From Amphiscolops sp. MND2022 (Eukaryota), in NCBI GenBank assembly GCA_964187785.1, contig OZ076420.1, forward strand, positions 26,722,001-26,786,000: a stretch of 64,000 nt of DNA. Reading direction: 5' to 3'. Positions 44,279 through 60,671 of the stretch are shown piece after piece; positions within the stretch are counted from its first letter, which is position 1, and the number at the start of each line of letters is the position of its first letter. Below the pieces are notes generated by a model. The model saw nothing but the letters and a program-made list of their open reading frames with translations. It was not told where the DNA came from and ran no database searches. The translations under genes and the position numbers were made by a program.

Positions 44279-44671
44279 TCAGAGACAACACCTGTTACGA
44301 CTATTTACCGGTGTTGTTTTAGAGTTAGTCGCAGTGTGAATTTTGACGGGGGTAGACGTCCTTGCTACGGAGACATTCTCTGGTTCCGAGTCCGAGTCTT
44401 GAGCATTCATGTAGACAGTCTGTTTTTTGTTTAAAGGCGCTATCAGTTTTAACATTTCCTTCTGGTTTTCCGCAAGTAGTTTGGTGAGATCAGACATAAT
44501 CTCTTTTCTTAATGATGTTTTTATCTCAGCCAAGTTTTCTGGTTCTATCCTAGGGATCTTGCTAGAACTAGCTACAAGAGTTTCAGGCGGAAAGTTTTCG
44601 GTTATGGAGGTTTCAAAATCACCGGAGACTAGTTCTGCTACAGCCTTCCTTTTCTGTTTTCTAGTTGTCAT
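44279..44671 (-). CDS. 3'-LTR copy of the gag N-terminus reading out into flanking DNA (130 aa)
   Basis: Matches gag aa 1-126 except R-K-Q vs R-S-Q and N vs S, then RCCL* from the flank. Confidence 0.6.
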   Translation of the reverse strand: MTTRKQKRKAVAELVSGDFETSITENFPPETLVASSSKIPRIEPENLAEIKTSLRKEIMSDLTKLLAENQKEMLKLIAPLNKKQTVYMNAQDSDSEPENVSVARTSTPVKIHTATNSKTTPVNSRNRCCL

Positions 44672-46428
44672 TTTGCTTCAGAGGGAGAGAGAGAGTATCT
44701 TTGGAAAGGTTAAATTCTTCAAAGATTCGTTTTCGTTATAATAACGGAACTGAACTGATTGTTATAAGTCAAGTTGGGAAAACTAACTGATTTACATGTA
44801 TGTATTACATATTTATACCTTCCCAGCATCATTTGTTCCTCACCTAAAAATTCCTAGGTATCACAAAAATCGGGTTTGTTCAACAAAAAGCGCTAATGAT
44901 TCATATTATTTCAGTCCCGCGTCATAAAATCAGGCATCAAAGTTCCTAGTTACGTCAGCATTCCGTAAAATTTGTTGAATTCATTTTTGTTCAGGCGGTT
45001 CATTTCCTGTTTGTGCTTCAAAATTGCGGTGAAATAGAAGTCTAGTTTTCATTTTCATCGACGCAAGCACGCCGGCGTGATCAATTAGTCAGATTCCTAA
45101 CTTAGAAATTGAAATTCGAAGTAAAAGAATGACACTCAAAAAATATCAACGGAACTGTGACGGAATGTGAATATTTTATGGCCAAAGATACTTGAAAACC
45201 AAAATGAGGAACAAGGTGACGCTGAGAAGTCTTTAGGAAGCGAATAGCTTGTGTAAATGCAAATTGTTACGAACTTTACATGTATTGGGAACTCAAAACA
45301 GAACATTTGATTTTAGCATCAAGTAAATGTCACGGAAACAGTCCGTTTATCAAGACTTGTTTAGCGACTAACACACTGAGTATTCAGGCTTACTGGTTTA
45401 AGAAAGCGTATAAAAATACATCATAGCACTCGGAAACAGATTGAACAAAGGTAGAAAAAGACTAGGAGAGGTTATTGGGATGATTATCACTGCATCATAT
45501 CAAAATTGGTACAAATTTCAAAACAACACGAACATTACGTTCATTTCATAATCCTATCTTACAGTACAACTATTCTTTACGTAAACTTAATCTTAGGATT
45601 CCCTAAGGTGTATGAATTCAGAAAAGTTCTTACAAAAGATTCATTCATTACGAAGTTTCCTAGTTGCAATTTCTTAAGTTGCTCCGTAAGTGCTCCGTAC
45701 GTATTAAGATTGCTTATAGCTGAGCAGCAGTAGCAAGCGGATTGGAAACGGAGAGCGCAGGCGAATTCATTCTCTTCTCTTAACTAGCAAGAGTTGCTAG
45801 GGGCAACCAAGCTTAATTTTATTGGTACCGGCTCGGATAATTCTGCCAACAAGCGACGCTATTGGTCCGTAAATATAGTAACGCCCGTCACCAGCTTAGT
45901 TGAGTGACGCTGTCATAACGTTGTAAACATTTACTTAAGATCACTTGACTGCGGTATTAAGTAGATATTTAGCAACTACTTTAATATTGGAATACATTTC
46001 CACTCTATTTTTGTATGTTTTTCCATTTTAGATCTCATGGGCTCCGTTGGGATCTCGGAGTTAAATGTTGTTTCTGTGTTTTCATTTTAGTGTGGAGCGC
46101 CAAAATGATCCCGTTTGCAAAACTATTTAGTATTTAGATTGGAATGGAAAACTCAGAAGATAAAACCGGAAATAAAACGGCGTTGCGTGTGAAAACATTA
46201 GGCCGGAAGTTTTAGCTAGTTTAAAATCATTTCTGAAAATCTTCCGTAACGTTTACGTTGAATTCCGTATTTAGAGAATTATTCGCGCTTATTTAATTGT
46301 ACTGTAAGTAGAATTTTGATTTGATTAGTTTAATAAAGTTTAAAAGTATTTACTGTGCCCTTGTCCTCTGCCGAATCCCGGTATTCCATAGCAGCAAGTA
46401 AAATTACGACCGGGAGCGGGTCGTGACA
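44293..46428 (-). repeat. 3' LTR of element C
   Basis: Direct repeat of 58295-60498, lacking a 68-bp segment. Confidence 0.96.
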
Positions 46429-47284
46429 GGGCCCCTCTTGATGAGAGTGACAAGTGTAGAGCGTGGCACTGCGGGATTTCTTTCCTTATTGTCACGGGGG
46501 GACGACCATTGTACCTTCTTGATTGGAGGGGGCCGCGACCTCTTCCCGCCTTCATGTCTCTAATTTTCCTCTCTTCTTCGTCTATTTCGCTGGCTTCCTT
46601 CTCCAATCGTTCCACTTCCTCCGGACAGCATTCGGGGGGTCTAATTATGATATTAGGACGCAGATTTTCTTTTGCGTGTAGCCCGCGTCCACGGCCTAAG
46701 GATGCGAGGTAATTTCTGTCCTCCAAATCTAGGCTGTACAGAGCTTCCAATTCCGCTAGAGGAGGCTCATTCAGGTCATTTAATTTTTCCGAGTTCGGCA
46801 TTCTTTCATTCCCCATAACAGGGATATTTTCCGTTCTTTTTAGAGCAGGGGTACGCTTTATTGGGGAGGGTAAGCGCTGCGGTGAGTCTGGCTCTTCATA
46901 ATAGTCCGTGTCAGAGTCGGCTGGCGGCAGATCGAACGTGACTTTTCCGGTTCTCCTTTTCTTTTTGGGTGTCGGTGCCGTTTCGGGCGACTCTGAGGTG
47001 GAAACCATTTCTGCATCACTTCCGCGATAAACTTCGATGGAAGAATCGCTCAAGTATCCTACCATATTGAGAGGCAGCGTTTTTGTCGGTGTACTAGTCT
47101 TATTGGCTTCTTCATCTGACGAGATGTCGATAACTAGTGAATAGTTATTCATTTTAGTAGGAGAGAATACTGAGTACTGTTTCGGAAAGGTTGCAGGTAA
47201 TTTGTTAGTGATGATTTCTTGTAACGCTTCAGAAAATTGAGAAAATTTTAAGCTGGTCAAGCTTCTGCTGAGGTTGGACGACAA
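46340..47284 (-). CDS. Accessory ORF-X of element C (314 aa, disordered; SIM, NLS and GRG motifs), spanning the PPT and U3
   Basis: LVIDISSDEE, PKKKRR, GRGRG twice; last ~30 codons lie inside the LTR. Confidence 0.75.
   Translation of the reverse strand: MSSNLSRSLTSLKFSQFSEALQEIITNKLPATFPKQYSVFSPTKMNNYSLVIDISSDEEANKTSTPTKTLPLNMVGYLSDSSIEVYRGSDAEMVSTSESPETAPTPKKKRRTGKVTFDLPPADSDTDYYEEPDSPQRLPSPIKRTPALKRTENIPVMGNERMPNSEKLNDLNEPPLAELEALYSLDLEDRNYLASLGRGRGLHAKENLRPNIIIRPPECCPEEVERLEKEASEIDEEERKIRDMKAGRGRGPLQSRRYNGRPPVTIRKEIPQCHALHLSLSSRGALSRPAPGRNFTCCYGIPGFGRGQGHSKYF
46429..46440 (-). promoter_or_regulatory. Polypurine tract of element C (CAAGAGGGGCCC)
   Basis: Immediately precedes the TGT of the 3' LTR in element orientation. 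Confidence 0.65.
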
Positions 47285-47768
47285 GTGAACGTTTTAAATT
47301 ATTTCCTTTCGGAAATTTCATCGAATTTATATTGGTCGATTTTTCGTTTTCGTTCCGGTTCGTCACGAGTTAAAGGAAACGAGTTCTTTCTTGCTGCGTT
47401 ATGATTGGTCGAAATACTTGAGGGAAACTTCTAATTTTAGTTTCCGTCCTCTTTTCGGTTAATGGCGTAATGACGTCACAGAATTACATCTGTATTCCGT
47501 GATCTTTTAATAAGTTCCCAAGTTCTTCTTGACATTTCTTGGTGGATTTTTATCCACTGTAAGGTCTTTGGAAACGTTTTGTTCCGTCTATGCCATAATA
47601 GGCTTTTATTGGAGTTGAAGATAGGGTGATTTTCATTTATGTAGGAATGATGTTATTAATTTCCTCCCAATTAGTTGCGTTTACGTAACGTAATATCTTC
47701 TTCTTTGTGATTTTCCTTCTTTTTCCTTTTTTAGATTGCTGTGGGCATCTTTGCTGTCGTTTCTTTCT

Positions 47769-50700
47769 ATGGATGACGAAACTGCTCCGCTCCAAGGCAC
47801 CGTCACCGGATTTGTCAGTGGCAATGAAACCAATTTTTGTTATACTGACGATGACGTGATCTTTTCGGAGGTGGAGGCAGTGGTTACTTCTTCAGGTTGG
47901 TAAAATCTTTCTGACTTTCATGGGTAATTGGACTGTTGTTTTGGTGATCAGCCTTTTCAGTCTTACCCGAATACCTGACGCGTCAAACAAGATCTTGATT
48001 TTCAGTAACTCAACCTGGCGCTTCAACTGCGGTTGTTTCCGTAGCCACTGCGGGAGTTCTTTCGACAGAGGCTACTGTTCTGCCATCAGTTTCTACTATC
48101 TTGTCTTCTAAGCCTTCTAGTGCTGTTAACGAAATGTTAACAACTGTATTGACTAGCGCTGAGCCCGACGATTCATTTCCAGTGGACTCTTCTCCTGTCA
48201 TTGTTGGTCCGAGTACGCGTGTTGTTGCTGCAAGTAGCGATAGTGAGTCTCAAGAAGGTGAGACAGATCCCCCCGCCAATAGAAAAACCCGTTGGTAGAT
48301 TCGTTTTTGATGGTGTATTTCTGGTATGTGGGCGGGGTGTACGAAATTTTTTTTGTTGTTATAGGTTTGAGGGATGCTTAGACGTATGGGCCTTCCAACA
48401 TTTGTGTGACGCCATCGAAACGGGCAAAGAAAGTTGTTATCGCTCCGCCATCGCCTCCTCCCTTGGTGCATGCTTCTACTGTTTGGCAGAGTTAGTTCTA
48501 ATATTGTTTTTATCTTCCGTTTCATTCTTTGAATTGGAGAGAGTGTTAGTTGCCCATTGGTTTGGTTTGTTTGGGGATGTCCTATTGTTTGGTACGCGTT
48601 TTCATTGGGTGTTGATGTTGTGTAGGTCACGATGATGATCAGTTGTATGGTGTCGGCGGTGTGACGTTGAGTCCCCAGGATGTGATGCGATTGGGTCAGC
48701 AACTTGTGGAAGAGGTGACGGAGAGTGCTACGCTGGTTATTCAAAACGGTTAGCATTTGCGTTTTCCCTGTAATTCGGGTATTACTTTGTTATTTGGTGA
48801 GGGTTTTCGTTCATTTTCAGTGTGGTGTGTATATTGTTTATCCCCTTCGTGTGTTGTTCGTAGAGTTGCAAGAGTTCAGTGGGAAGGTAGAAAAACGTCT
48901 GGCCAAGCGGACAGTGAAGACATACGGGAATCGCAACACGTTGCATCGTCGTATGTTGAGTCGACATCCTGCTTTTCCTGATTTCGTAACTGGCTCCACG
49001 ACCGGTGAGGGAACTCACTTCCACTGTCGGGTATGCAAGCGTGATGTGGCCATGAAAGCTCAGGGCTCTGGAAAGTTTAGCAGACATTTCCGTTCTGATG
49101 CTCACTGGTTTAAGGACGTTACTTATCGCGTCCATATGGATCTTCAGGTGCTCAACAGGTTGATGGAGCCGATGGAACTGTCAGCAAGTCAACTGGCAGA
49201 CTATAAGTCTCGACCATTTTGTGATCTGAGCGGGGAGTATCCGTTCCCTGAAGATCTATTGCCCAAGCATTCAAAAGCGGAGTCAAACGTGCCCTACATG
49301 ACCTTGGTTTCTTGTTTTTGCGAATTCTTGCGGAATGGTGGTGATTTTGATTACCTTCGTCGTCTGTGGGGCCACTTCCGAGCAACCTTGGGCGACCGAG
49401 AACCTTGCTTTCCTTTACGATGGAGCCGTTCTGAGACCGTGGTGAGTTGGTTTGGTTATTGGTATTGTTTATTTCCGTCATGTATCCGGGTGAGAGAAAA
49501 ACAGAAAGGGATGGGGGGATGTCTTTTGTAGTTGTTTTGAAAGTAGGGTCTCGTTTGTGTTTTAGTCATTCCTTTGTCGGGGGCTGGCTCCGCGAGTTCT
49601 TCGTCTGATGTTGAGTGACGTCAAATCTTTTAAAGAGTACGGGATGCAGTTTGAGAAGTCTGGGAACATAGAAAGTTGCTATATTCTTTGTTGGGATGCG
49701 CTGAATTTAAAGAAGATTTGTGTGGGAGATCAGTCCTTGGATCAAAAAATGCCCGAACCCGAGTTGCTCCCGTTGGCACGTGTAGCGAGCTGTCTAGAGG
49801 GACAGCAATTACCGGTGTCAGTTCTTGGCGCTAGCCCTTCCCTCATTCGCATGTTAGACGCGAACAGGACGGATGATCGGCGGTTTCTGTCATGGCAGTC
49901 GTTTGATGAGGAGGTGTTTCTCCATTGTTTCCGTCAGTCTCATCAGGACATTTTTGGAATGATTGAAGTGACGACTGCATTGGAGTATGTGATCCATCGA
50001 TTGAAAGGGGCTTTGTATGAGGATTGGACAGAAGACAGGCCTCTTCTTCGATCGTGCATACGGGAAGGCTCCGTTGCATTCTGCAATCTTCGAGAGGTCC
50101 TAGGCGATTTAATCGAACTGTGGCCTTCCATACGTCCTTACATTCGCTACACTGGACATCCTCATTTTAAGAGTGTTGCTGATAGGGTGAGTACCGTCGT
50201 ATTATTTGTACATTTCGGTCTTGTGTCGTTCCTTTGTTCTCTCTTGTGCTCTGCTGTGGTATATATGATCTTGGAATGATGGTATAATTTATCCATTTTA
50301 GCTGCGCGGCACGGACTTCGAGTTAATCTCCGATAGTCTCATTGTCTATCGTTTCGGCTTCCTTCGACTGCTTTTAGACTCCTGTAAGTATGGTGAGCTT
50401 TCGTTATAGTTGTTCTCTTTCGACTGTTTCTGATTGTGGTAGTGTATTGGCTGATGTTTCTTGTCGTTGTGGATATGCTATTGTATCTGGTTTCTATTGG
50501 CTGCTTCGTTTTGATCAAGGATTCTGCTTCTTTTCAATAGTTCATGTGTTTAGATTACTTCAATTTTGAGAGATTGCGTCAGTGCCGGAGAGATTACGGG
50601 TTTCATGGTTACGGTGAGGTCTGCAACTTCGTTTACTGTCTGCTGATGCGAACCCGCAAGCTGTCTGATTTGCCAGGTATCCATGAGTGGGAAAGTTATA

Positions 50701-51818
50701 TGGATATTTCGAAACTTTCTTATTTCAACGCTATTTCCATGGAGGAGTTCCTGATGGACAGTGATTTTGGTCGCGAGCTGGTCACTGTCAAGACGAGTGA
50801 GATGCGGGAATTCCGCGTTAAATGTCGTGAGTGTATCGATCGGCTTGTGTCTTTGATCCTGACTAGTACAGCTGTGACTTCTGGCGTTTCGCGAGGTTTT
50901 TATGCTTTCTGTCCGGAGATTATGTTGGGCGGCGACGATCACCACATTTTCGAGTTGTTTGGCTCTCTTTGTGATTTGTTCAGATCCTGCCACGTGATGT
51001 CTTCGGACGGCTTGAATGCTGCTGTTAATGAGTTCAAGAGCTATGTGATAGAGAAACGCAGGCATTACGAGGATGCGACATGTGCTGCGAGTGAGATTCC
51101 TGACGTGGTTCAGTTTCTGTTGCGGGATTTTGCCTTCCAGTCTCGGAGTCATGTATTTCGACTGTTTAAAATATGTTGTCTGGTGGTTGGAGTGCCAAAA
51201 AGTAACCTTCCTGCAGTTATTATCGATTTGGGTGGTAGCGCGCTGAGTCCGGCAGTGGTTCAGGATTGTGTATTGTTAGTGCAGTCTCACATCATCAGTC
51301 CGAGTTTCAATCCTCGATTGTTCTTTTCAGCTTCGTTGCTTGTTGCAGTCCGAGAAGCTATTGCAGAGTCAGGCATTTTCTTCAGAGTTGCCGATTTTGA
51401 TGTATGGAAAGATTTTTGCTCCGGCGATATGGAGTCTTTTGCTGGGCATTATCGATCTTTGTATAAGAAGTATTTAATGGGACGACAGAAAGAGTACGAC
51501 ACTTTCTATGTGGAAAGCAACAAGACGAATCGGCGTTCTCGCGAGAGTCAGTGTTCAAGTTCAACTGAGGCCGGAAGTGCTACAAATTCTGTTGTCGGTT
51601 CCAAGAAAGCATCGTCCAAGATTGCTTCGTCAAAGTCTGTGAAGGCAGGTGCGTCTACTGCTCGTTCATCAGCAAAGGTTGTGAGTAGGGAAGATGGAGC
51701 TGTTGCGAAAAAGAGTGGTGGTGGCAGTGCGTCTAGAAAGTCAAAGAAGGATAAGAGCAGTGATTCTGATGATCCTGATGTAGTCCACAAGTTGAAAAAG
51801 ACATCTTCTAAGCATTAA
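47769..51818 (+). CDS. Spliced antisense gene in element C: BED-like zinc finger plus degenerate hAT-transposase-like protein (~980 aa). Exons 47769-47895, 48006-48257, 48864-49441, 49566-50186, 50302-50392 (or -50383), 50554-51818
   Basis: All five GT-AG introns are phase-compatible; FHCRVC..RHFRSDAH finger; the HCFRQ and VPKSNL motifs resemble hAT. Confidence 0.72.
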
Positions 51819-52009
51819 TGGATAATTGATGATGATTTGATTTCCTGATGAATTATATCTTTTGATGTACCTGTTATTTGTATTCTTTGTTTTATGGTCT
51901 GGTTGATTTCTACGAGTCCCACCATTCGTTCATTATAGTTACGTAGTTTTGGTAGATTGTAAAAATTGACGTAGTCATTCCGGTTCGGTTTGATATGCTG
52001 ATTTTTTGT

Positions 52010-55000
52010 CTAGTCCTGAGTTGATCGTAGTTCTCCCGTAGTGACTGAGTCGAGCATTCGGAAGTCAGGATTTACGTTAGGTCGTGGATTAGGTCCTAAA
52101 TTGTATCGGCCTACTTTCCTAGGATTATATCCAATGACTATAGGCGGTAGTTCGGGTGTTTTGGGAGGGCTTTCTATAGGTGGCGGTGTAAAAATATAGG
52201 GGTTGTCGCTGACGTCCAAGTTAAATGACGTTATGTTGTCGGAGGATGTTTTCCCTTCTGCAGAGTTTTCATTTGTGGCTGTTTGAGCCACGTCATTTTC
52301 CGTTATATCTTCGTTTGTGGTTGTTTTAACCACGTCATTTTCCGCTGTAATTCCAGTTGTGACTGTTTTAATCACATCATTTCCCGTTGTAATTTCGTTG
52401 TTTTCTGTTGTGTCTGTGATTTTTGCGACTGTGGTTTCTTCGGTGGCGTTTTCCGTATTGTTTCCGAACAAAACTTCTCCGAATTCGGTTTCCCAAGCTT
52501 GCGCGTACCAATCATTGTGGGTTGTTTTAACCTCTGGATCTGGAAGGTAATCTTCCCTTCTGACTGTTACGTCAGGTACTCGCTGATTGGGCGCATATAG
52601 CCTTAGGCGAATTCTATGGAGGGTTTGTGTATACCTAGTTCCTGTGCGACGTACGACGTAGTTATTGTTCGAGAGTACTTTGACTACTATGTAGGGTCCA
52701 GTCCAAATGCAATCTTTAAAGGCAAATTTCATTGACTGGTTGTCTGCCTTCGGGTTGAGGACGTAGCAGTAGTCGTTGACTTTGAGCGGTGTAGCCGTTG
52801 CTTTCTTGTCATAGTACTGTTTGTATTTGAGGTAAGACTGCATTAGGTTCTCTTTGGCAGCTTGGTGTATCTCGGCTATTTGTTTCTGTAGTTGGTCCGT
52901 TAGTTCTTCATTGCTATCTTTTTCTCATTTAGGTTTTAATCCAAGTTTTATGTCCAAAATGTTGTACGGGATGCGTCCGTGAAACACTGTTGTAGGTTCA
53001 CAACCTAGGCTTTCATGGTAGCTTGTATTGTAATTCATGACTGCAATCTGGACGTATTTGTGCCACATGGAACGTCGTTCTCCCGTTGATATCTTTAAAG
53101 AGGTTTTTAAAGAAGCATGAGTCCTTTCTAAGATGCCAATTGTTTGGGCGTGTTTCGTCGATGCGTGGCTTATCCTTATATCCAATGTTTGTGCTATTTG
53201 GTTGACTACTTCTGACCTGAATTGTGATCCTTTATCCGTTAGAATGACGGTCGGTAGATAGCAGTGTCGTGTCATGACATCTATTATGCATCGTGCGACT
53301 GTTTTTGCTGTCATATCTTGAGTCGGGTAAGCGAAAAGGTAACGCGAAAAAACATCCATCGTCGTTATGATGTGTTGGTATCCATTTGAGGAAGGTAGAT
53401 TTGGTAGAATGTCTACTTCTAGGCAGTCTTCTGGTCCCATTGTGAATTCAGTGTTGCTTGGCATTTTGGGACGTATCTGTCTTGTGTCTATTCTTTTATT
53501 GGCGATGCAATCCTGACAACTGGTTACCCAAGCTCTGATTTTTCGTGCAAGACCCGGGAAGTAGTATTTCGCTCTGCATTCTTGTATCATTTTGGTGAAT
53601 CCTGGGTGTTTATTTGTTTTCCCATGTAGAGTGGACAGGAGTTCTGGGACTAGGTGTTTTGGAATTATAATTTGGTTATGTGTGACTGTTCCGTCTTCTC
53701 CATAATACTTTCGCATCAGAACTCCATCTTTCATTATGATTCTTCCTTCGTGGCGTAGTAGGTTTCGTCCTCGTGGTTCAGTTTTGAGAAGGTGCTTGTC
53801 ATATTCTTCGTGTGAGATCCGTTGTTTCAGTGCTTTGAGGAGGGGATCTGCATCTTGTTCGTTTCTGATCCGTGCATTTTCCTTAATTGCACCAAAAGAG
53901 TAGACTGTGGAGTTGAGTGGTATCTTGATGACTTCGGTTACCTTTGTTGATAGTTCTCTTTCATGTTCATCTAGGGCACGTCGTTTGCTGAGTTCCTTTC
54001 GGGCAAAAATTTCTTGCTCAGATTCATCTTCTTCATCTGGTAGGAAGAAAAGTTGTTCCTCGTCAGCTACATCTGATGATTGTAGGTTAACTTCAATTGG
54101 GGACGTTAGGATGTCGTTCCGTAGTTTAAGTTGTACCTTTTCTTTCGGTGTAAGTTCAAGTCTTGAGAGAAAATCTGCTGCTGTGTTTTGGGAGCCTGCT
54201 ACGTGCATGATCCGGAACTTGAACTGAAGTACGTAGTCGCAGGCATTCCACAGTGCTGGTGGTGTTGTTTTCGTCTGAAAGAATCTGGTTACTGAGCGGT
54301 TGTCCGTTAAGACCAGAGTCGGAATTGTTGTCTCCCATAGTATATGGCTGTATTCAAGGAAGGCGTGGTAGATTGCCAAGAATTCCTTGCAGTAGATGGA
54401 CATTTTCAGTTGTGCAGGTGAAAAAACTCGTGATCCGAACGCTGCTGGTGCGAAGGTTTTCCGTTTGGAGAGTATTTTGCGTTCGTCGTTCTCCTCGATC
54501 ATGAGGGCGTAGCCTGATGCACGAAAGCTTGCATCCGTCATTAGAACGTACTGTTTTCCTGCTATGGGCTGTCGGAGTGCAAGTCCACAAGCTTCCGCTA
54601 AACTGGCGTTAATTTCCTTAAAGTTACCGACAAGTTCTTCTGAAATTCTGATTTTGGAGTCTGCTTTGAGAAGTTCGTACATGCCAATGAGTTTTTCTGA
54701 CAAGCGCGGTATGTAGTTGCGGTAGTAGTTAACAAAGCCAATGTATTTTTGAACTTGTTTTTTGGATTTGGGGAAGCGGACTTTGGAGAGGAAATTTTTG
54801 ACTTTTTGATCTTGCGGGGCTACGCCGTCGGGGGTGATGGTTCGGCCAAGGAATTCGATTTCGGTTACTCCAAAATGGCATTTTTCGATGGTTAGTTTTA
54901 ATCCTGCTTTTCTAATGCATTTGAAGACTGCTCTGATGTTCTGTATGAGCTGTTCCGTTGTGTTTGCGGCAATGCCAATGTCATCTACGTATTGTGCACA

Positions 55001-55702
55001 TTGGTCGGCTTTGATAACTGATTCCAGATACTCTCGCTTGAAGCTCGAAAAAGCTGATAGGGCTCTGCTTAGTCCTTGTGCCAGGCGACGGTAGGCGAAC
55101 GTCCTACTAGCAAAATTAAAAGCAAGTAACTCTACTGACCTTTGATCAGCCATTTGAAGGCAGTGATACGCCTGGGAGCAGTCAAGCTTGCAGAATAGTT
55201 TTTTCCCTGCTAGGTGTTGTGCCGCATCTGAGAGGGTGCTGACAGGGTGGTTGTTGTTGATGTAGTCATCTGCTATAAGTGCGTTGATTTTGCGCAGATC
55301 CACCAGTAGCCTCAGTTTGCCGTTGGGTTTCCGTTGTGCAAATATGGGACTGGCATACTTGGAGAAGGGGAGTGTCGTGATGATTCCGTATCGATGCATG
55401 AGGGCCAGTTCCACAGTCAGGTCTTCTTTGAGGTTGATTGGGACGGGTAGGCTCTGTGTGTAGACTGGTTTGTCATCTTGTGGTGTTAGGCTGACTTTGA
55501 ATTGTGTGTTCATCCCTATGTCTAGCCGGTGTCGAGCGAAGATGTCGTTGAATTCGACAATGGTGTCCTCGAGGTTTTCACGGTCATTGTTCGCAATCTG
55601 TGAATCTGTCCATTTGAACATGGATAGAAATTTGTTTCGAGACTCTTCGTTTTCGGTTGGGTCAAGTTTTTCTAGCTCGGCAAGGTCTCGCAATTCTTTC
55701 AA
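52010..55702 (-). pseudogene. pol: RT-RNaseH-integrase of element C; in-frame TGA (Trp codon) at 52925-52927
   Basis: KLDCSQAY, QYVDDI, LMTDAS, H-x5-H..C-x2-C zinc finger, VDILP..TDKG..LER; the C-terminal part 52010-52843 is in the same frame. Confidence 0.95.
52267..52396 (-). repeat. ~39-bp coding minisatellite in the integrase tail
   Basis: ITTGNDVIKTVTT / ITAENDVVKTTTN / DITENDVAQTATN. Confidence 0.75.
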
Positions 55703-55713
55703 GATTCGCTTTT

Positions 55714-57266
55714 TTATGGGATCGGAAACCAGAATTTCTCTTCATTGTCGTCGGGCCGCTCTACTTGCATTAGTGCATTGATGTACGTGACCGCATCGTC
55801 ATGGTTAGTGAGGAGGTTTAGGGCGGCTATGTCAACTGGGCGGATCATCTTCGTTTCTTCGGGTTTCAGGATTTGCAGTTCTGCCATTTTGGTATTGGTG
55901 GCTATTGTGTATGGGAAGTCTGTAGTGTTGGCGATTTTTATTGGTATCTTTTTGTCTCTGGCTGTTGTAATCGCTGGAGCTACTATTACCTTCGCGCATT
56001 CGTCGAATTGTGGTAGGGGTTGTATAGTGCCCGTTATTGAGTGTTCGATACTCACAGGGATTGTTGCGTAGATGATTCGGGTAGAGTGCGCTGGGATTGT
56101 ATGCTTGGCTTCGGTCTTTATCGTGATGGGTTTGGGATTGCATTTTTGTCTTTCGTCTGTGAGCGCCATCGTGATTTGGATCTTGGGAAAGTCAATGGTT
56201 CCCTGTGCCGTGTCAAGGATCGCGGCATGCTTACGTAGGAACGCTAATCCAATTATAGGGAATGACGTTTGATTCACGATGATGAATGTTTCTTCAAAAG
56301 TGTAATCCCCTATTTTGAAACGTAGGGTGTACGTGGCAAGTGGTTGTTCTAATTCGGCGTTGGCATACTGCACTTTGAAAGGGGGTGGGGGTGCCTTATT
56401 GATGATGCACTGACTGGCGTGCTGTCGGAGTTTTTCAGCGTCCCTTTCGCTAATAGCGTTAATGTACGCACCTGAGTCGACTAAGGCGTCGATTTTGACC
56501 GTGTTGAATTCGACTGGTAGGAAAAGCATTCGTTTTTTCTTCTTGAGCGCGATGGAAGACATTAACGGGATGTAGTCGTCGTCTTTGTCATGTTGGATGA
56601 ATTCCTTGATGGTGTCTAGATCTTCAGGCAATTTTGAGGGACATTCCGTGATTTCTACGTCGTCATTCATTAATGTTGTGACGGGCGCGGTTTTTGGAGG
56701 GGTCACTGAAGGATGAGCATTTTCTCGTTTTTGTTTTTCTTGATGCGCCCATATGGTTTTGTCCTCGACGCAGATGATGTTCTCAGCGTCTATTGGTGTG
56801 GACGTGATGGTGACGGGTACTGTTGGGGATGGTGTTGTTCTTTTGAGAATTGGCGATGGTGGTGATGGTAGGTCCATGATTTCTGTGGATTGAGCCTGGG
56901 GGTTTGAGACTTGTATTTTGAAGGAGAGTTTGTTAGTATCATGAATGGTTGGTTCATCCCAGGGATCGCATCTGTAGTCTCTATCATAGATGTAGATACG
57001 TTCAGTTTTTGATTCTGGTAAGGGTCGCTTGAGTGTTGCGTAGTTATCTGGTGACTCTGTTATCCATTGAGGTAGTGGTGTTGGGTCGTTTGGATGTCTG
57101 GCATTGTGTCGGAGTATCATGCCTACGTTCCATCGGCGTTGCCAGTCCTGAGTTGGTTCTTCATTACACTCTGTGAAAAAATCTTCTTCGTACCTATTTG
57201 GGGGGTCTTCGATGGTGTACGCCCTCGCGTCTACTTTTTCCCCGAAGCGAAGGCGCGGCGACTTCA
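55714..57266 (-). pseudogene. pro: Protease-containing 5' part of pol (element C), entered by -1 frameshift; broken from RT by a ~34-nt deletion near 55720
   Basis: DALVDSGAYIN, FPIIGLAFL; the -1 frame is open from 57266 to the ORF at 57120. Confidence 0.9.
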
Positions 57267-58673
57267 GTTTTTTGCTTGGGACGACGTCGTAGGTACGGGT
57301 TGTTCGTCAATCTTGTTTGTTGGGATAGTGAACTCACGTTTGCGTTTCCTGGGGTCATTTGCCGCATTGGCTCCGTCCCAGCAATTTTCGGTTTTGTGCA
57401 TTTTTCCACAAGTATCGCATTTGGGTTTAGCTGTATCTGTTGGTTTGGTGTCTGTGGTACTTGTTTTTGTGGCGTAGTACCTGTCTTTGCGGAGGCGACG
57501 GCATTGTGCCTTGTAATGTCCGTATTTCCCACAGTGGAAACAGTAACCTCTCTGCTGTTGTTCTTTCTTATCATCCGCCACTGCTGCGTCTACAGTGTTG
57601 AGGGGGACTAGGGTGGTTTCATCAGGCGCTCCTAGTCCGTTGAGTCGCATTTCGCGTTCAAGGTGTAAAACAATGTCATTATAGGGCTTATCTTCTAGGT
57701 AAGCTTTGTTAAGGATCTTTTTTACGTGATCCGGCATTTTAGCGTTAATGGCTTTGTCGATGAACTTCTGGGCTTCTGAGCCAAACGCTTTTTTTGCGGT
57801 TTTTTGTAACGCGTCAAGAAATTCGTGTAGTTTTTGTTTAGTGGGGTCGAAGTGTAGCGCATCCCACTCGCATCTCGCTTTAGCGGATGATTGGAAATCG
57901 CCAAAGCGACGTTTGAATGCCGTTATGACTTCTTCTAGGTTGTCTTTTTTAGTGTCGTCTAGGTTGCAATACGCTTGTAGTGCGTTTCCTCGTAGGAGTG
58001 AATGGAAGTAGTTGATTTTTTGTATCTCGGTTAAGTGAGGGTACATTTTGATATTATTTCGGAATAGGTCCTCAAAAAGTTCAAACTTTTCGGACTTACC
58101 ATCGAAGACTGGAAGCGAAGCGGTGAGTGCTTTCGGCATCGGAAGGAGATTGGTAGCTGGAAATGTTTGCGGTTGTGGCGCGAACAGGATCTTAGATGTT
58201 GAAGGACGGTCTTTTGTCTGTTCGTTGGGTGCGCGTTGTTGTTTCGGTCTTTTCGCGGGTTGGTTGGTAGAGTCATTGAGGACTCCTGTCACCATGTTAC
58301 GACTATTTACCGGTGTTGTTTTAGAGCTGGTCGCAGTGTGAATTTTGACGGGGGTAGACGTCCTTGCTACGGAGACATTCTCTGGTTCAGAGTCCGAGTC
58401 TTGAGCATTCATGTAGACAGTCTGTTTTTTGTTTAAAGGCGCTATCAGTTTTAACATTTCCTTCTGGTTTTCCGCAAGTAGTTTGGTGAGATCAGACATA
58501 ATCTCTTTTCTTAATGATGTTTTTATCTCAGCCAAGTTTTCTGGTTCTATCCTAGGGATCTTGCTAGAACTAGCTACAAGAGTTTCAGGCGGAAAGTTTT
58601 CGGTTATGGAGGTTTCAAAATCACCGGAGACTAGTTCTGCTACAGCCTTCCTTTTCTGACTTCTAGTTGTCAT
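57264..58673 (-). CDS. gag: Gag of element C (469 aa)
   Basis: LPVFDGKSEKF; CFHCGKYGHYKAQC and CDTCGKMHKTENC knuckles. Confidence 0.95.
   Translation of the reverse strand: MTTRSQKRKAVAELVSGDFETSITENFPPETLVASSSKIPRIEPENLAEIKTSLRKEIMSDLTKLLAENQKEMLKLIAPLNKKQTVYMNAQDSDSEPENVSVARTSTPVKIHTATSSKTTPVNSRNMVTGVLNDSTNQPAKRPKQQRAPNEQTKDRPSTSKILFAPQPQTFPATNLLPMPKALTASLPVFDGKSEKFELFEDLFRNNIKMYPHLTEIQKINYFHSLLRGNALQAYCNLDDTKKDNLEEVITAFKRRFGDFQSSAKARCEWDALHFDPTKQKLHEFLDALQKTAKKAFGSEAQKFIDKAINAKMPDHVKKILNKAYLEDKPYNDIVLHLEREMRLNGLGAPDETTLVPLNTVDAAVADDKKEQQQRGYCFHCGKYGHYKAQCRRLRKDRYYATKTSTTDTKPTDTAKPKCDTCGKMHKTENCWDGANAANDPRKRKREFTIPTNKIDEQPVPTTSSQAKN
57267..57273 (-). promoter_or_regulatory. -1 frameshift heptamer A-AAA-AAC (element C)
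   Basis: GCA AAA AAC TGA; downstream stem CGCCTTCGC/GCGAGGGCG. Confidence 0.78.
58280..58294 (-). promoter_or_regulatory. PBS TGGTGACAGGAGTCC (tRNA-Leu-like), inside gag
   Basis: Abuts the LTR end; encodes MVTGV. Confidence 0.82.
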
Positions 58674-60498
58674 TTTGCTTCAGAGGGAGAGAGAGAGTAT
58701 CTTTGGAAAGGTTAAATTCTTCAAAGATTCGTTTTCGTTATAATAACGGAACTGAACTGATTGTTATAAGTCAAGTTGGGAAAACTAACTGATTTACATG
58801 TATGTATTACATATTTATACCTTCCCAGCATCATTTGTTCCTCACCTAAAAATTCCTAGGTATCACAAAAATCGGGTTTGTTCAACAAAAAGCGCTAATG
58901 ATTCATATTATTTCAGTCCCGCGTCATAAAGTCAGGCATCAAAATTCCTAGTTACGTCAGCATTCCGTAAAATTTGTTGAAGTCATTTTTGTTCGGGCGG
59001 TTCATTTCCTGTTTGTGCTTCAAAATTGCGGTAAAATAGAAGTCTAGTTTTCATTTTCATCGACGCAAGCACGCCGGCGTGATCAATTAGTCAGATTCCT
59101 AACTTAGAAATTGAAATTCGAAGTAAAAGAATGACACTCAAAAAATATCAACGGAACTGTGACGGAATGTGAATATTTTATGGCCAAAGATACTTGAAAA
59201 CCAAAATGAGGAACAAGGTGATGCTGAGAAGTCTTTAGGAAACGAATAGCTTGTGTAAATGCAAATTGTTACGAACTTTACATGTATTGGGAACTCAAAA
59301 CAGAACATTTGATTTTAGCATCAAGTAAATGTCACGGAAACAGTCCGTTTATCAAGACTTGTTTAGCGACTAACACACTGAGTATTCAGGCTTAATGGTT
59401 TAATAAAGCGTATAAAAATACATCATAGCACTCAGAAACAGATTGAACAAAGGTAGAAAAAGACTAGGAGAGGTTATTGGGATGATTATCACTGCATCAT
59501 ATCAAAATTGGTACAAATTTCAAAACAACACGAACATTACGTTCATTTCATAATCCTATCTTACAGTACAACTATTCTTTACGTAAACTTAATCTTAGGA
59601 TTCCCTAAGGTGTATGAATTCAGAAAAGTTCTTACAAAAGATTCATTCATTACGAAGTTTCCTAGTTGCAATTTCTTAAGTTGCTCCGTAAATGCTCCGT
59701 ACGTGTTGTGGTTGCTTATGGTAGGGCGGTGGAATACAATTTTACAATCCGCCCCGTAAGTGCTCCGTACGTATTAAGATTGCTTATAGCTGAGCAGCAG
59801 TAGCAAGCGGATTGGAAACGGAGAGCGTAGGCGAATTCATTCTCTTCTCTTAACTAGCAAGAGTTGCTAGGGGCAACCAAGCTTAATTTTATTGGTACCG
59901 GCTCGGATAATTCTGCCAACAAGCGACGCTATTGGTCCGTAAATATAGTAACGCCCGTCACCAGCTTAGTTGAGTGACGCTGTCATAACGTTGTAAACAT
60001 TTACTTAAGATCACTTGACTGCGGTATTAAGTAGATATTTAGCAACTACTTTAATATTGGAATACATTTCCACTCTATTTTTGTATGTTTTTCCATTTTA
60101 GATCTCATGGGCTCCGTTGGGATCTCGGAGTTAAATGTTGTTTCTGTGTTTTCATTTTAGTGTGGAGCGCCAAAATGATCCCGTTTGCAAAACTATTTAG
60201 TATTTAGATTGGAATGGAAAACTCAGAAGATAAAACCGGAAATAAAACGGCGTTGCGTGTGAAAACATTAGGCCGGAAGTTTTAGCTAGTTTAAAATCAT
60301 TTCTGAAAATCTTCCGTAACGTTTACGTTGAATTCCGTATTTAGAGAATTATTCGCGCTTATTTAATTGTACTGTAAGTAGAATTTTGATTTGATTAGTT
60401 TAATAAAGTTTAAAAGTATTTACTGTGCCCTTGTCCTCTGCCGAATCCCGGTATTCCATAGCAGCAAGTAAAATTACGACCGGGAGCGGGTCGTGACA
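58295..60498 (-). repeat. 5' LTR of element C
   Basis: Followed by the PBS; contains the gag start codon at 58673. Confidence 0.96.
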
Positions 60499-60671
60499 AC
60501 ACCCGCTAGTTGTTTGTAAGCATAACAAACTGAAGAAATAAAACTTTTATACAATTTGAGTTTTTGTTGTAATGATTTTAGATACAAACTTACAATACTA
60601 TTTCAATGATTTTTAGTCAGTTCTTCGTTTTTACAACAATACAGCAACATTCACTATTTTAGTATACTCAC

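Follow-up and report, generated by a model that had tools for sequence, protein, structure and literature searches.

An antisense gene divided by five introns was found within a long terminal repeat (LTR) retrotransposon of the Ty3/gypsy type in Amphiscolops sp. MND2022 (assembly GCA_964187785.1, contig OZ076420.1, forward-strand positions 26,722,001 to 26,786,000). This whole stretch of 64,000 nt is called here the window, and all positions refer to it. The element is an intact-ended, young insertion, and the gene lies on the strand opposite to its gag and pol genes. The antisense gene is real, is under purifying selection in exactly the predicted frame and belongs to the retrotransposon. We infer its splicing and its function from the genomic sequence and not from transcripts. 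The best overall explanation, which we hold to be rather probable, is that a young gypsy element carries a conserved spliced antisense gene for a catalytically dead accessory protein derived from a hAT transposase.

The antisense gene and its conservation

Removal of five GT-AG introns (47896-48005, 48258-48863, 49442-49565, 50187-50301 and 50393-50553) leaves six plus-strand exons between 47769 and 51818, which together give an open frame of 2934 nt for a protein of 977 amino acids (aa). All five introns have GT(G/T)(A/G)G donors and acceptors formed by a pyrimidine tract and (C/T)AG. The first-pass annotation of this DNA had proposed five phase-compatible GT-AG introns and a protein of about 980 aa, and both stand, since the splice borders are clean and the frame is open over 977 aa. 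Its placement of the gene between the integrase and the polypurine tract (PPT) of an intact-ended element is likewise borne out by the LTRs, the target-site duplication (TSD), the PPT and the map of open reading frames (ORFs): the gene is antisense and lies between the stop of the integrase (52010) and a sense-strand ORF, ORF3, ahead of the PPT and the 3' LTR. All the motifs that it quoted were located in the spliced protein, namely the zinc finger at aa 179-207, GMQFEKSG at 345-352, VLGASPSL at 405-412, HCFRQ at 439-443 and VPKSNLPAV at 770-778. Further small exons had also been suggested within 48258-48863, and none was seen there; the density of shared substitutions of this second intron (5.6%) is among the highest of the introns.

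Two features were observed on the plus strand upstream of the start codon: the palindrome TGACGTCA, similar to a cyclic AMP response element (CRE-like), at 47471-47478, about 290 nt upstream of the ATG, and a candidate intron of the 5' untranslated region, with a GTAAGG donor at 47559 and a pyrimidine tract and TAG acceptor at 47735, just ahead of the start codon.

At least 37 nearly full copies of the gene with its introns (the cassette), 89-100% identical, were found in the 1.07-Gb genome out of 1348 first-look candidates. The cassette is present in all 37 scored copies and the introns in nearly all of them; splice dinucleotides are retained almost everywhere, and the entire spliced frame is open in 11 of the 30 aligned copies. 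Variants common to two or more copies affect 3.3% of first, 2.4% of second and 5.7% of third codon positions, and 5.0% of intron positions. Indels in multiples of three are enriched in exons, where they make up 14 of 35, against 3 of 69 in introns (Fisher p 9e-6). The ratio of nonsynonymous to synonymous divergence (dN/dS), calculated against five copies from subfamilies 89-93% identical, was 0.17-0.22 overall and 0.04-0.36 for the separate exons (exons 1-2, 0.30; exon 3, 0.09; exon 5, 0.04). When the six frames were compared, dN/dS was 0.19 in the predicted frame and 0.29-1.63 in the other five. The second-lowest value (0.29) belongs to one minus-strand frame, which would be expected to score low if it shared its third codon positions with the plus-strand frame. 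Concerning depth, the summed k-mer depth of public genomic DNA runs at 47781-48166 (exon 1, intron 1 and exon 2) was higher than elsewhere in the cassette by a factor of 4-20, and many more repeats seem to contain this S/T/V-rich segment than contain the rest of the element.

None of the related lineages examined, some with as little as 25% protein identity, lacked the gene. In eight of the eight related loci with enough flanking sequence (L031-L036, L055 and L056), pol and a homologous gene are on opposite strands, about 150-330 nt separate the facing 3' ends of that gene and of the integrase, and plus-strand ORFs are located upstream of the gene and a sense ORF downstream. A profile search detected 844 members of the family at E<=1e-3 among 50%-identity representatives in public data. 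Homologues of exons 4 and 6, as ORFs of about the size of the exon, occur in large numbers in public assemblies, to 37% identity, and their similarity ends exactly at the predicted exon edges (for example, between ADR and VS, and between FQ and S(F/L)LCRGLAPR). In loci L033-L036, with 41-60% protein identity, the match of exon 3 ends on the window junction codons 319/320, and that of exon 4 begins there in three of the four. Intron borders of the GT(A/T)AGT...(C/T)AG type are present at this junction in L033-L036, equivalent borders of intron 4 are present in L033-L035, and the introns of these four loci are 82-207 nt long. Introns 3 and 4 thus occupy the same codon positions as in the window. 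Intron positions are conserved while intron sequences and lengths are not.

Relatives without introns were also found. P0202, an uninterrupted ORF of 890 aa from a different ENA sample, is colinear with aa 156-959 of the spliced protein (E 2e-65), without any break at junctions 3, 4 and 5, and 12 further single-ORF relatives of the clade B set (730-890 aa) align likewise. The removal of the introns consequently reproduces a protein that nature also encodes without them. Intron 5 is absent in the L034 lineage (L034 9992-11284), and introns 3-5 are absent in clade B, in which the main body is one ORF of about 860-890 aa (L055 10001-12586; L056 10001-12658; L042 927-3599). Most simply, the lineages without intron 5 or without introns 3-5 arose by recombination with reverse-transcribed spliced antisense mRNA, although the differences between lineages may represent loss or gain, in either direction. 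The first-pass annotation held that the introns survive retrotransposition only because they are antisense to the genomic RNA. The logic is sound, as they are present in that RNA as the reverse complement and so are not spliced, and they are found in nearly all copies. However, they are not immutable, as the sister lineages without intron 5 or introns 3-5 demonstrate.

Could the cassette be a simple nested hAT transposon insertion, or a recently transduced host gene, travelling as a passenger in this copy or subfamily? Nested insertions are common, and this origin had been named from the beginning as the alternative to an element-encoded gene. However, no inverted repeats bracket the cassette, with only short pairs at chance level in 46429-52400, and neither the terminal inverted repeats nor the 8-bp duplication of a hAT DNA transposon flank it. 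Moreover, it occupies the same slot in every diverged lineage examined and is under purifying selection. A nested insertion is thus effectively refuted and deserves hardly any credence. The G+C content of the cassette (0.45-0.48) is near that of the rest of the element, which is uninformative on insertion either way. Very improbable too is that the conservation comes from constraint at the RNA level, either of the sense genomic RNA or of a non-coding antisense transcript, and not from constraint on a protein. It is true that divergence in the introns (K 0.10-0.15) is lower than the synonymous divergence of the exons (dS 0.17-0.26), which points to some non-coding constraint in the region. However, the constraint on the exons is specific to the predicted frame, the excess of indels in multiples of three is found in exons, and similar proteins can still be recognised at 25% identity, a divergence at which the DNA cannot be aligned.

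Probable relationship to hAT transposases

The exons were folded separately, and the structural evidence refers to the exon models and not to the whole spliced protein. The exon 6 model had a predicted local distance difference test (pLDDT) score of 63 overall and of 70-94 over residues 1-210, and was all-alpha. It matched clusters of the AlphaFold DB at E 2.4e-7 to 1e-3, of which three are named HAT C-terminal dimerisation domain proteins, and none of its matches in that database points to another transposase superfamily. It also matched an ESM Atlas cluster with PF27073 (FAM200-ZBED5_RNase-like) and PF05699. When compared with the Hermes transposase (PDB 8edg, 8sjd, 6dww and 4d1q), residues 121-207 of exon 4 superpose on Hermes 273-354 and residues 1-216 of exon 6 on Hermes 367-570. 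Both matches are colinear and adjacent, the 30-residue exon 5 fills the gap between them, and one of the two ranked first of 48,161, well clear of the next. A Foldseek search of the exon 6 model against the PDB gave nothing at E<=1; a further comparison of this model with the PDB gave matches of long helices only, and Hermes was outside Foldseek's 340 candidates. With the low-confidence exon 4 model, the shape search of the Atlas retrieved unrelated bacterial and viral clusters, with template modelling (TM) scores <=0.32, and the AlphaFold DB search gave only weak rows (E about 1e-2), several of them with hAT-type names.

The language-model neighbours of exon 3 and of full-length P0202, with scores of 0.79-0.92, included zf-BED, zf-C2H2_12, DBD_Tnp_Hermes, DUF4371 and DUF659, as well as FAM200-ZBED5_RNase-like, ZBED1_RNase-like and Dimer_Tnp_hAT clusters, each of them singly being a lead only. 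Those of exon 3 were zf-BED and zf-C2H2_12, at scores <=0.89, and FAM200-ZBED5_RNase-like. The CX2CX16HX5H motif of the finger is conserved in both clades of the family, A and B, with invariant Cys and His, and no Pfam zinc-finger model matches it. The strand and helix order predicted for exon 4 (b-b-b...b-a-b-a) was obtained at pLDDT <50.

Exon 6 would encode, in this order, an all-alpha domain (aa 558 to about 770), a poorly modelled segment (about aa 770-850), a long helix and a disordered, basic S/K-rich tail from aa ~885. The all-alpha domain agrees with the large helical insertion within the RNase-H fold that is expected of a hAT transposase. The poorly modelled segment is located where a hAT dimerisation-like domain would be expected. 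For the dimerisation domain PF05699 there was no Pfam match and the hhalign probability was 0.2%, while the three Foldseek matches named for it reach query residues ~270-304, where the pLDDT of the model is 44-58. From the models and their neighbours, we consider a Buster/ZBED5/FAM200-like transposase of the hAT superfamily to be the likely ancestor of the protein. Its parts would be an N-terminal C2H2/BED-like finger, an RNase-H-like core, the all-alpha insertion and, possibly, a degenerate hAT C-terminal part.

The expected catalytic positions had been described in the first-pass annotation as substituted, and across the family they are indeed not conserved acidic residues. It must be considered that these equivalences were assigned by motif position and not by superposition, and are a positional guess. 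At the expected first aspartate (strand 1) clade A has E or K, and clade B has R, Q, L and others; at the expected second aspartate (strand 4) G or N is found across both clades, and the histidine of the CxxH motif is not retained in clade B. An acidic residue persists near the expected hAT glutamate, in the context I-D-L in clade A and V-D/E-I-S in clade B. A catalytic RNase-H-like core with the conserved D, D, E triad and C/DxxH of hAT transposases was thus not found, which makes nuclease activity unlikely, and judging from these residues the protein is probably unable to cut DNA.

True hAT elements are plentiful in the same genome, with canonical C-termini of the ...PATSASSERSFS... type (L043-L054). 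A genome-wide search for PF05699 yielded 2215 candidates, among which 150 scored matches passed the cut-off.

Structure of the retrotransposon

The features of the element are collected in Table 1. The TG..CA ends of the LTRs, the short TSD, the primer-binding site, the PPT and the pol order protease, reverse transcriptase (RT), RNase H and integrase agree with a Ty3/gypsy (Metaviridae-type) element, and no env gene was recognisable in it.

Table 1. Features of the Ty3/gypsy-type element and of its antisense gene (positions in the window)
Feature	Position	Strand	Evidence and remarks
Whole element, Ty3/gypsy-type LTR retrotransposon	44293-60498	-	16.2 kb; strand is that of the sense orientation
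TSD ACACC, left copy	44288-44292		Right copy at 60499-60503; perfect 5-bp match of both flanks
3' LTR (sense orientation)	44293-46428	-	TG..CA ends; 98.5-99.7% identical to 58295-60498
ORF3, sense strand, 314 aa	46340-47284	-	ORF list; between antisense gene and 3' LTR, crosses the PPT into the LTR
PPT AAGAGGGG	46432-46439	-	3 nt upstream of the 3' LTR; sequence reading
Antisense gene, exon 1	47769-47895	+	ATG at 47769; splice model; tblastn matches in L033 and L034
Antisense gene, exon 2	48006-48257	+	Splice model; S/T/V-rich low-complexity N-terminal region
Antisense gene, exon 3	48864-49441	+	CX2CX16HX5H zinc finger (49019-49105); conserved block SNVP...LRRLW...WSxxET
Antisense gene, exon 4	49566-50186	+	Predicted order b-b-b...b-a-b-a, RNase-H-like; then helices matching Hermes residues 272-354
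Antisense gene, exon 5	50302-50392	+	30 codons; 73% identical high-scoring segment pair in L033
Antisense gene, exon 6	50554-51818	+	Stop at 51816-51818; parts described in the text
Integrase C-terminal ORF	52010-52843	-	Integrase_p58_C, E 7.6e-5, below Pfam cut-off; convergent with antisense gene
pol ORF, RT, RNase H and integrase	52925-55702	-	Pfam RVT_1, RT_RNaseH, RT_RNaseH_2, Integrase_H2C2 and rve
pol ORF upstream of RT (protease region by position)	55714-57120	-	ORF list; sister copies have aspartic-protease matches there
gag ORF	57264-58673	-	ORF list; start inside 5' LTR; DUF1759 in equivalent ORF of sister copies
Primer-binding site candidate TGGTGACAGGAGTCCTCA	58277-58294	-	Directly after 5' LTR; assigned by position and TGG start only
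5' LTR	58295-60498	-	TG..CA ends on minus strand; paired direct repeat

The two LTRs, of 2136 and 2204 bp, differ in length by about 70 bp, with an indel or short duplication at 45717-45681 versus 59719-59751. The gag ORF starts about 380 nt within the 5' LTR (LTR start 58295), so that the primer-binding site is translated, and the same ORF start is seen again in the 3' LTR (44279-44671). Within pol, a single in-frame stop (55714-55716, minus strand) separates the protease-region ORF from the RT ORF, and the integrase C-terminal ORF is in another frame than the RT ORF (52843-52927, minus strand). In some sister lineages pol is one continuous ORF of 1424-1700 aa, and in others it is also split. 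The Atlas neighbours of pol come from mixed taxa. The stop codons of the convergent antisense gene and integrase C-terminal ORF are about 190 nt apart. The ORF that takes the place of ORF3 in L033-L036 is 34-57% identical to it in amino acids, and the RGALSRPAPGR end is conserved. A Pfam search assigned ORF3 to no family, and it seems to be a fourth gene of the element.

Proposed role, alternatives and significance

Several results weigh against a spliced antisense gene for a hAT-derived protein, and they concern both the hAT identity and the splicing. Searched against Pfam at E<=10, the three large ORFs of the window, six sister-locus pieces and seven relatives of full length had no credible match, and the few rows obtained were weak and pointed to unrelated families. 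Profile hidden Markov model (HMM) searches of PDB sequences with the exon 6 alignment (A3) and the full-length clade B alignment (A5) gave chance matches only and did not find Hermes. Comparison by hhalign of the family profile with hAT ORFs of the same genome (L043-L054) reached a probability of <=1.1%, with templates of one to few sequences and hence low power. Regarding splicing, the public sequencing runs with the sequence (n=4, one study) are genomic DNA contigs in which the introns are covered, without canonical junctions. In addition, AATAAA is absent on the plus strand across the internal region 46338-59401 and therefore downstream of the stop codon, so the polyadenylation signal should be non-canonical or located elsewhere. 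The hAT-like identity claimed in the first-pass annotation is consequently upheld by the fold and language-model evidence and not by membership at sequence level, for which Pfam, PDB HMM and hhalign searches were all blank.

One alternative accepts a real, element-encoded gene and denies its hAT origin: the protein would represent a separate, undescribed zinc-finger family, whose helical domain merely resembles the hAT insertion domain. We regard this as rather unlikely because four partly independent lines (the names of the AlphaFold DB matches, the Pfam families of the Atlas cluster, the neighbours of two different queries in the language model and the Hermes matches of two separately folded exons) lead to one superfamily only, and because the order of finger, b-b-b-a-b-a and helical insert agrees with that of hAT transposases. 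Another alternative accepts the hAT origin and reverses the function, so that the protein would restrain transposition, either by repressing the copy number of its own element or by competing with, or repressing, resident hAT DNA transposons. Dominant-negative repressors are classically built in this way, from a catalytically dead transposase in which the parts for DNA binding and dimerisation are retained, and truncated transposases such as KP repress P elements. The many true hAT elements of the genome and the convergence of the 3' end of the antisense gene on pol also favour this possibility. However, the divergence between the protein and the resident hATs is so great that no similarity can be detected, and this speaks against its forming heterodimers with them or recognising their ends. 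Its long retention in element lineages that are themselves deeply diverged is explained at least equally well if it benefits the element. We consider such a restraining protein improbable, although the data fit both activation and repression and a repressor role is the main functional rival of the accessory factor proposed below.

As regards the accessory factor, a nuclear, DNA-binding role is suggested by the zinc finger, by an architecture for DNA binding and dimerisation that would derive from a transposase, and by the basic tail rich in S and K. In the mechanism that we tentatively put forward, and to which we give somewhat less than even confidence, an internal antisense promoter upstream of 47769 would drive a spliced mRNA. 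The resulting protein would enter the nucleus by means of its basic tail, dimerise and bind DNA through its zinc finger and transposase-derived domains. As an accessory factor encoded by the element, it would then regulate LTR transcription or silencing, or tether the integration complex. This proposed role would be comparable to that of retroviral regulators of the HBZ/Tax type and to the one proposed for the antisense TRP28 proteins of the plant element Retand. Possible but doubtful is a broader scenario in which a large and old clade of gypsy-type elements, in a non-plant and probably animal genome, has permanently co-opted a disabled hAT transposase in the form of an antisense accessory gene with introns, whose protein would bind the DNA of the element or chosen target sites to steer integration or counter silencing. 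In such a clade, introns would be gained or lost through the element's own reverse transcription of spliced antisense mRNA.

Additional ORFs in antisense (aORF-3R) have been described in plant Ty3/gypsy elements, such as Retand (TRP28, PF04195), maize Grande gene23 and rice RIRE2, which are conserved across the lineage, are predicted to be DNA-binding or nuclear and have a proposed regulatory role (PMC11963269; PMC7264820). Like them, and following their definition (PMC7264820; PMC11963269), the gene studied here is an accessory ORF that runs opposite to gag-pol in the interval from pol to the 3' LTR and that most copies of the lineage retain. The domains of the plant ORFs are TRP28 or SMC-like, and the review states that these ORFs resemble no other transposable elements; introns are not mentioned by that word in either paper, and the review only recommends that antisense and spliced transcripts be looked for (PMC7264820; PMC11963269). 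In contrast, the gene of the window is in a non-plant host, has five introns with lineage-specific absence and encodes a protein like a disabled hAT transposase. No Pfam match to TRP28/Transposase_28 (PF04195) was obtained at E<=10 with the window pieces, the sister loci or the full-length relatives.

A protein-coding gene in antisense within an LTR retroelement is also known in HBZ of human T-lymphotropic virus 1 (HTLV-1) and ASP of human immunodeficiency virus 1 (HIV-1). HBZ is a bZIP protein, transcribed from the 3' LTR and with one intron. It is a spliced nuclear regulator (also as cited in PMC11963269). Unlike HBZ, the protein of the window is large, multi-domain and transposase-like, with six exons, and its element has no recognisable env. 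As to the protein itself, the nearest language-model and structural neighbours are the domesticated hAT proteins of the Buster/Charlie type, ZBED5, FAM200, GTF2IRD2, EPM2AIP1 and SCAND3 (PF27073, PF14291, PF18658 and PF05699), with which it shares a predicted zinc finger, RNase-H-like core, helical insertion and C-terminal part. Loss of catalytic residues is common among these domesticated proteins. However, they are encoded by single-copy host genes, while the gene of the window is multi-copy and inside a retrotransposon, and none of their Pfam models was reached even at E 10. The other likeness is to the Hermes transposase, on which the exon 4 and exon 6 models superpose colinearly.

In a non-exhaustive literature search, no antisense gene with introns and a transposase origin was found described for an LTR retrotransposon outside plants. 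The family is large and has neither names nor Pfam matches, and so annotation pipelines probably miss or miscall it. To our knowledge, LTR retrotransposons with accessory genes in antisense have been reported almost exclusively from plants. In the element described here such a gene would have an origin that can be traced, with the fold of a class II transposase within a class I element, and a multi-intron structure that would be heritable only because it is antisense to the genomic RNA, with an intron content that differs among sister lineages. It may therefore offer a natural system for studying the role of these accessory proteins in regulation, targeting or anti-silencing, how retroelements capture and keep foreign genes, and the loss of introns via reverse transcription.

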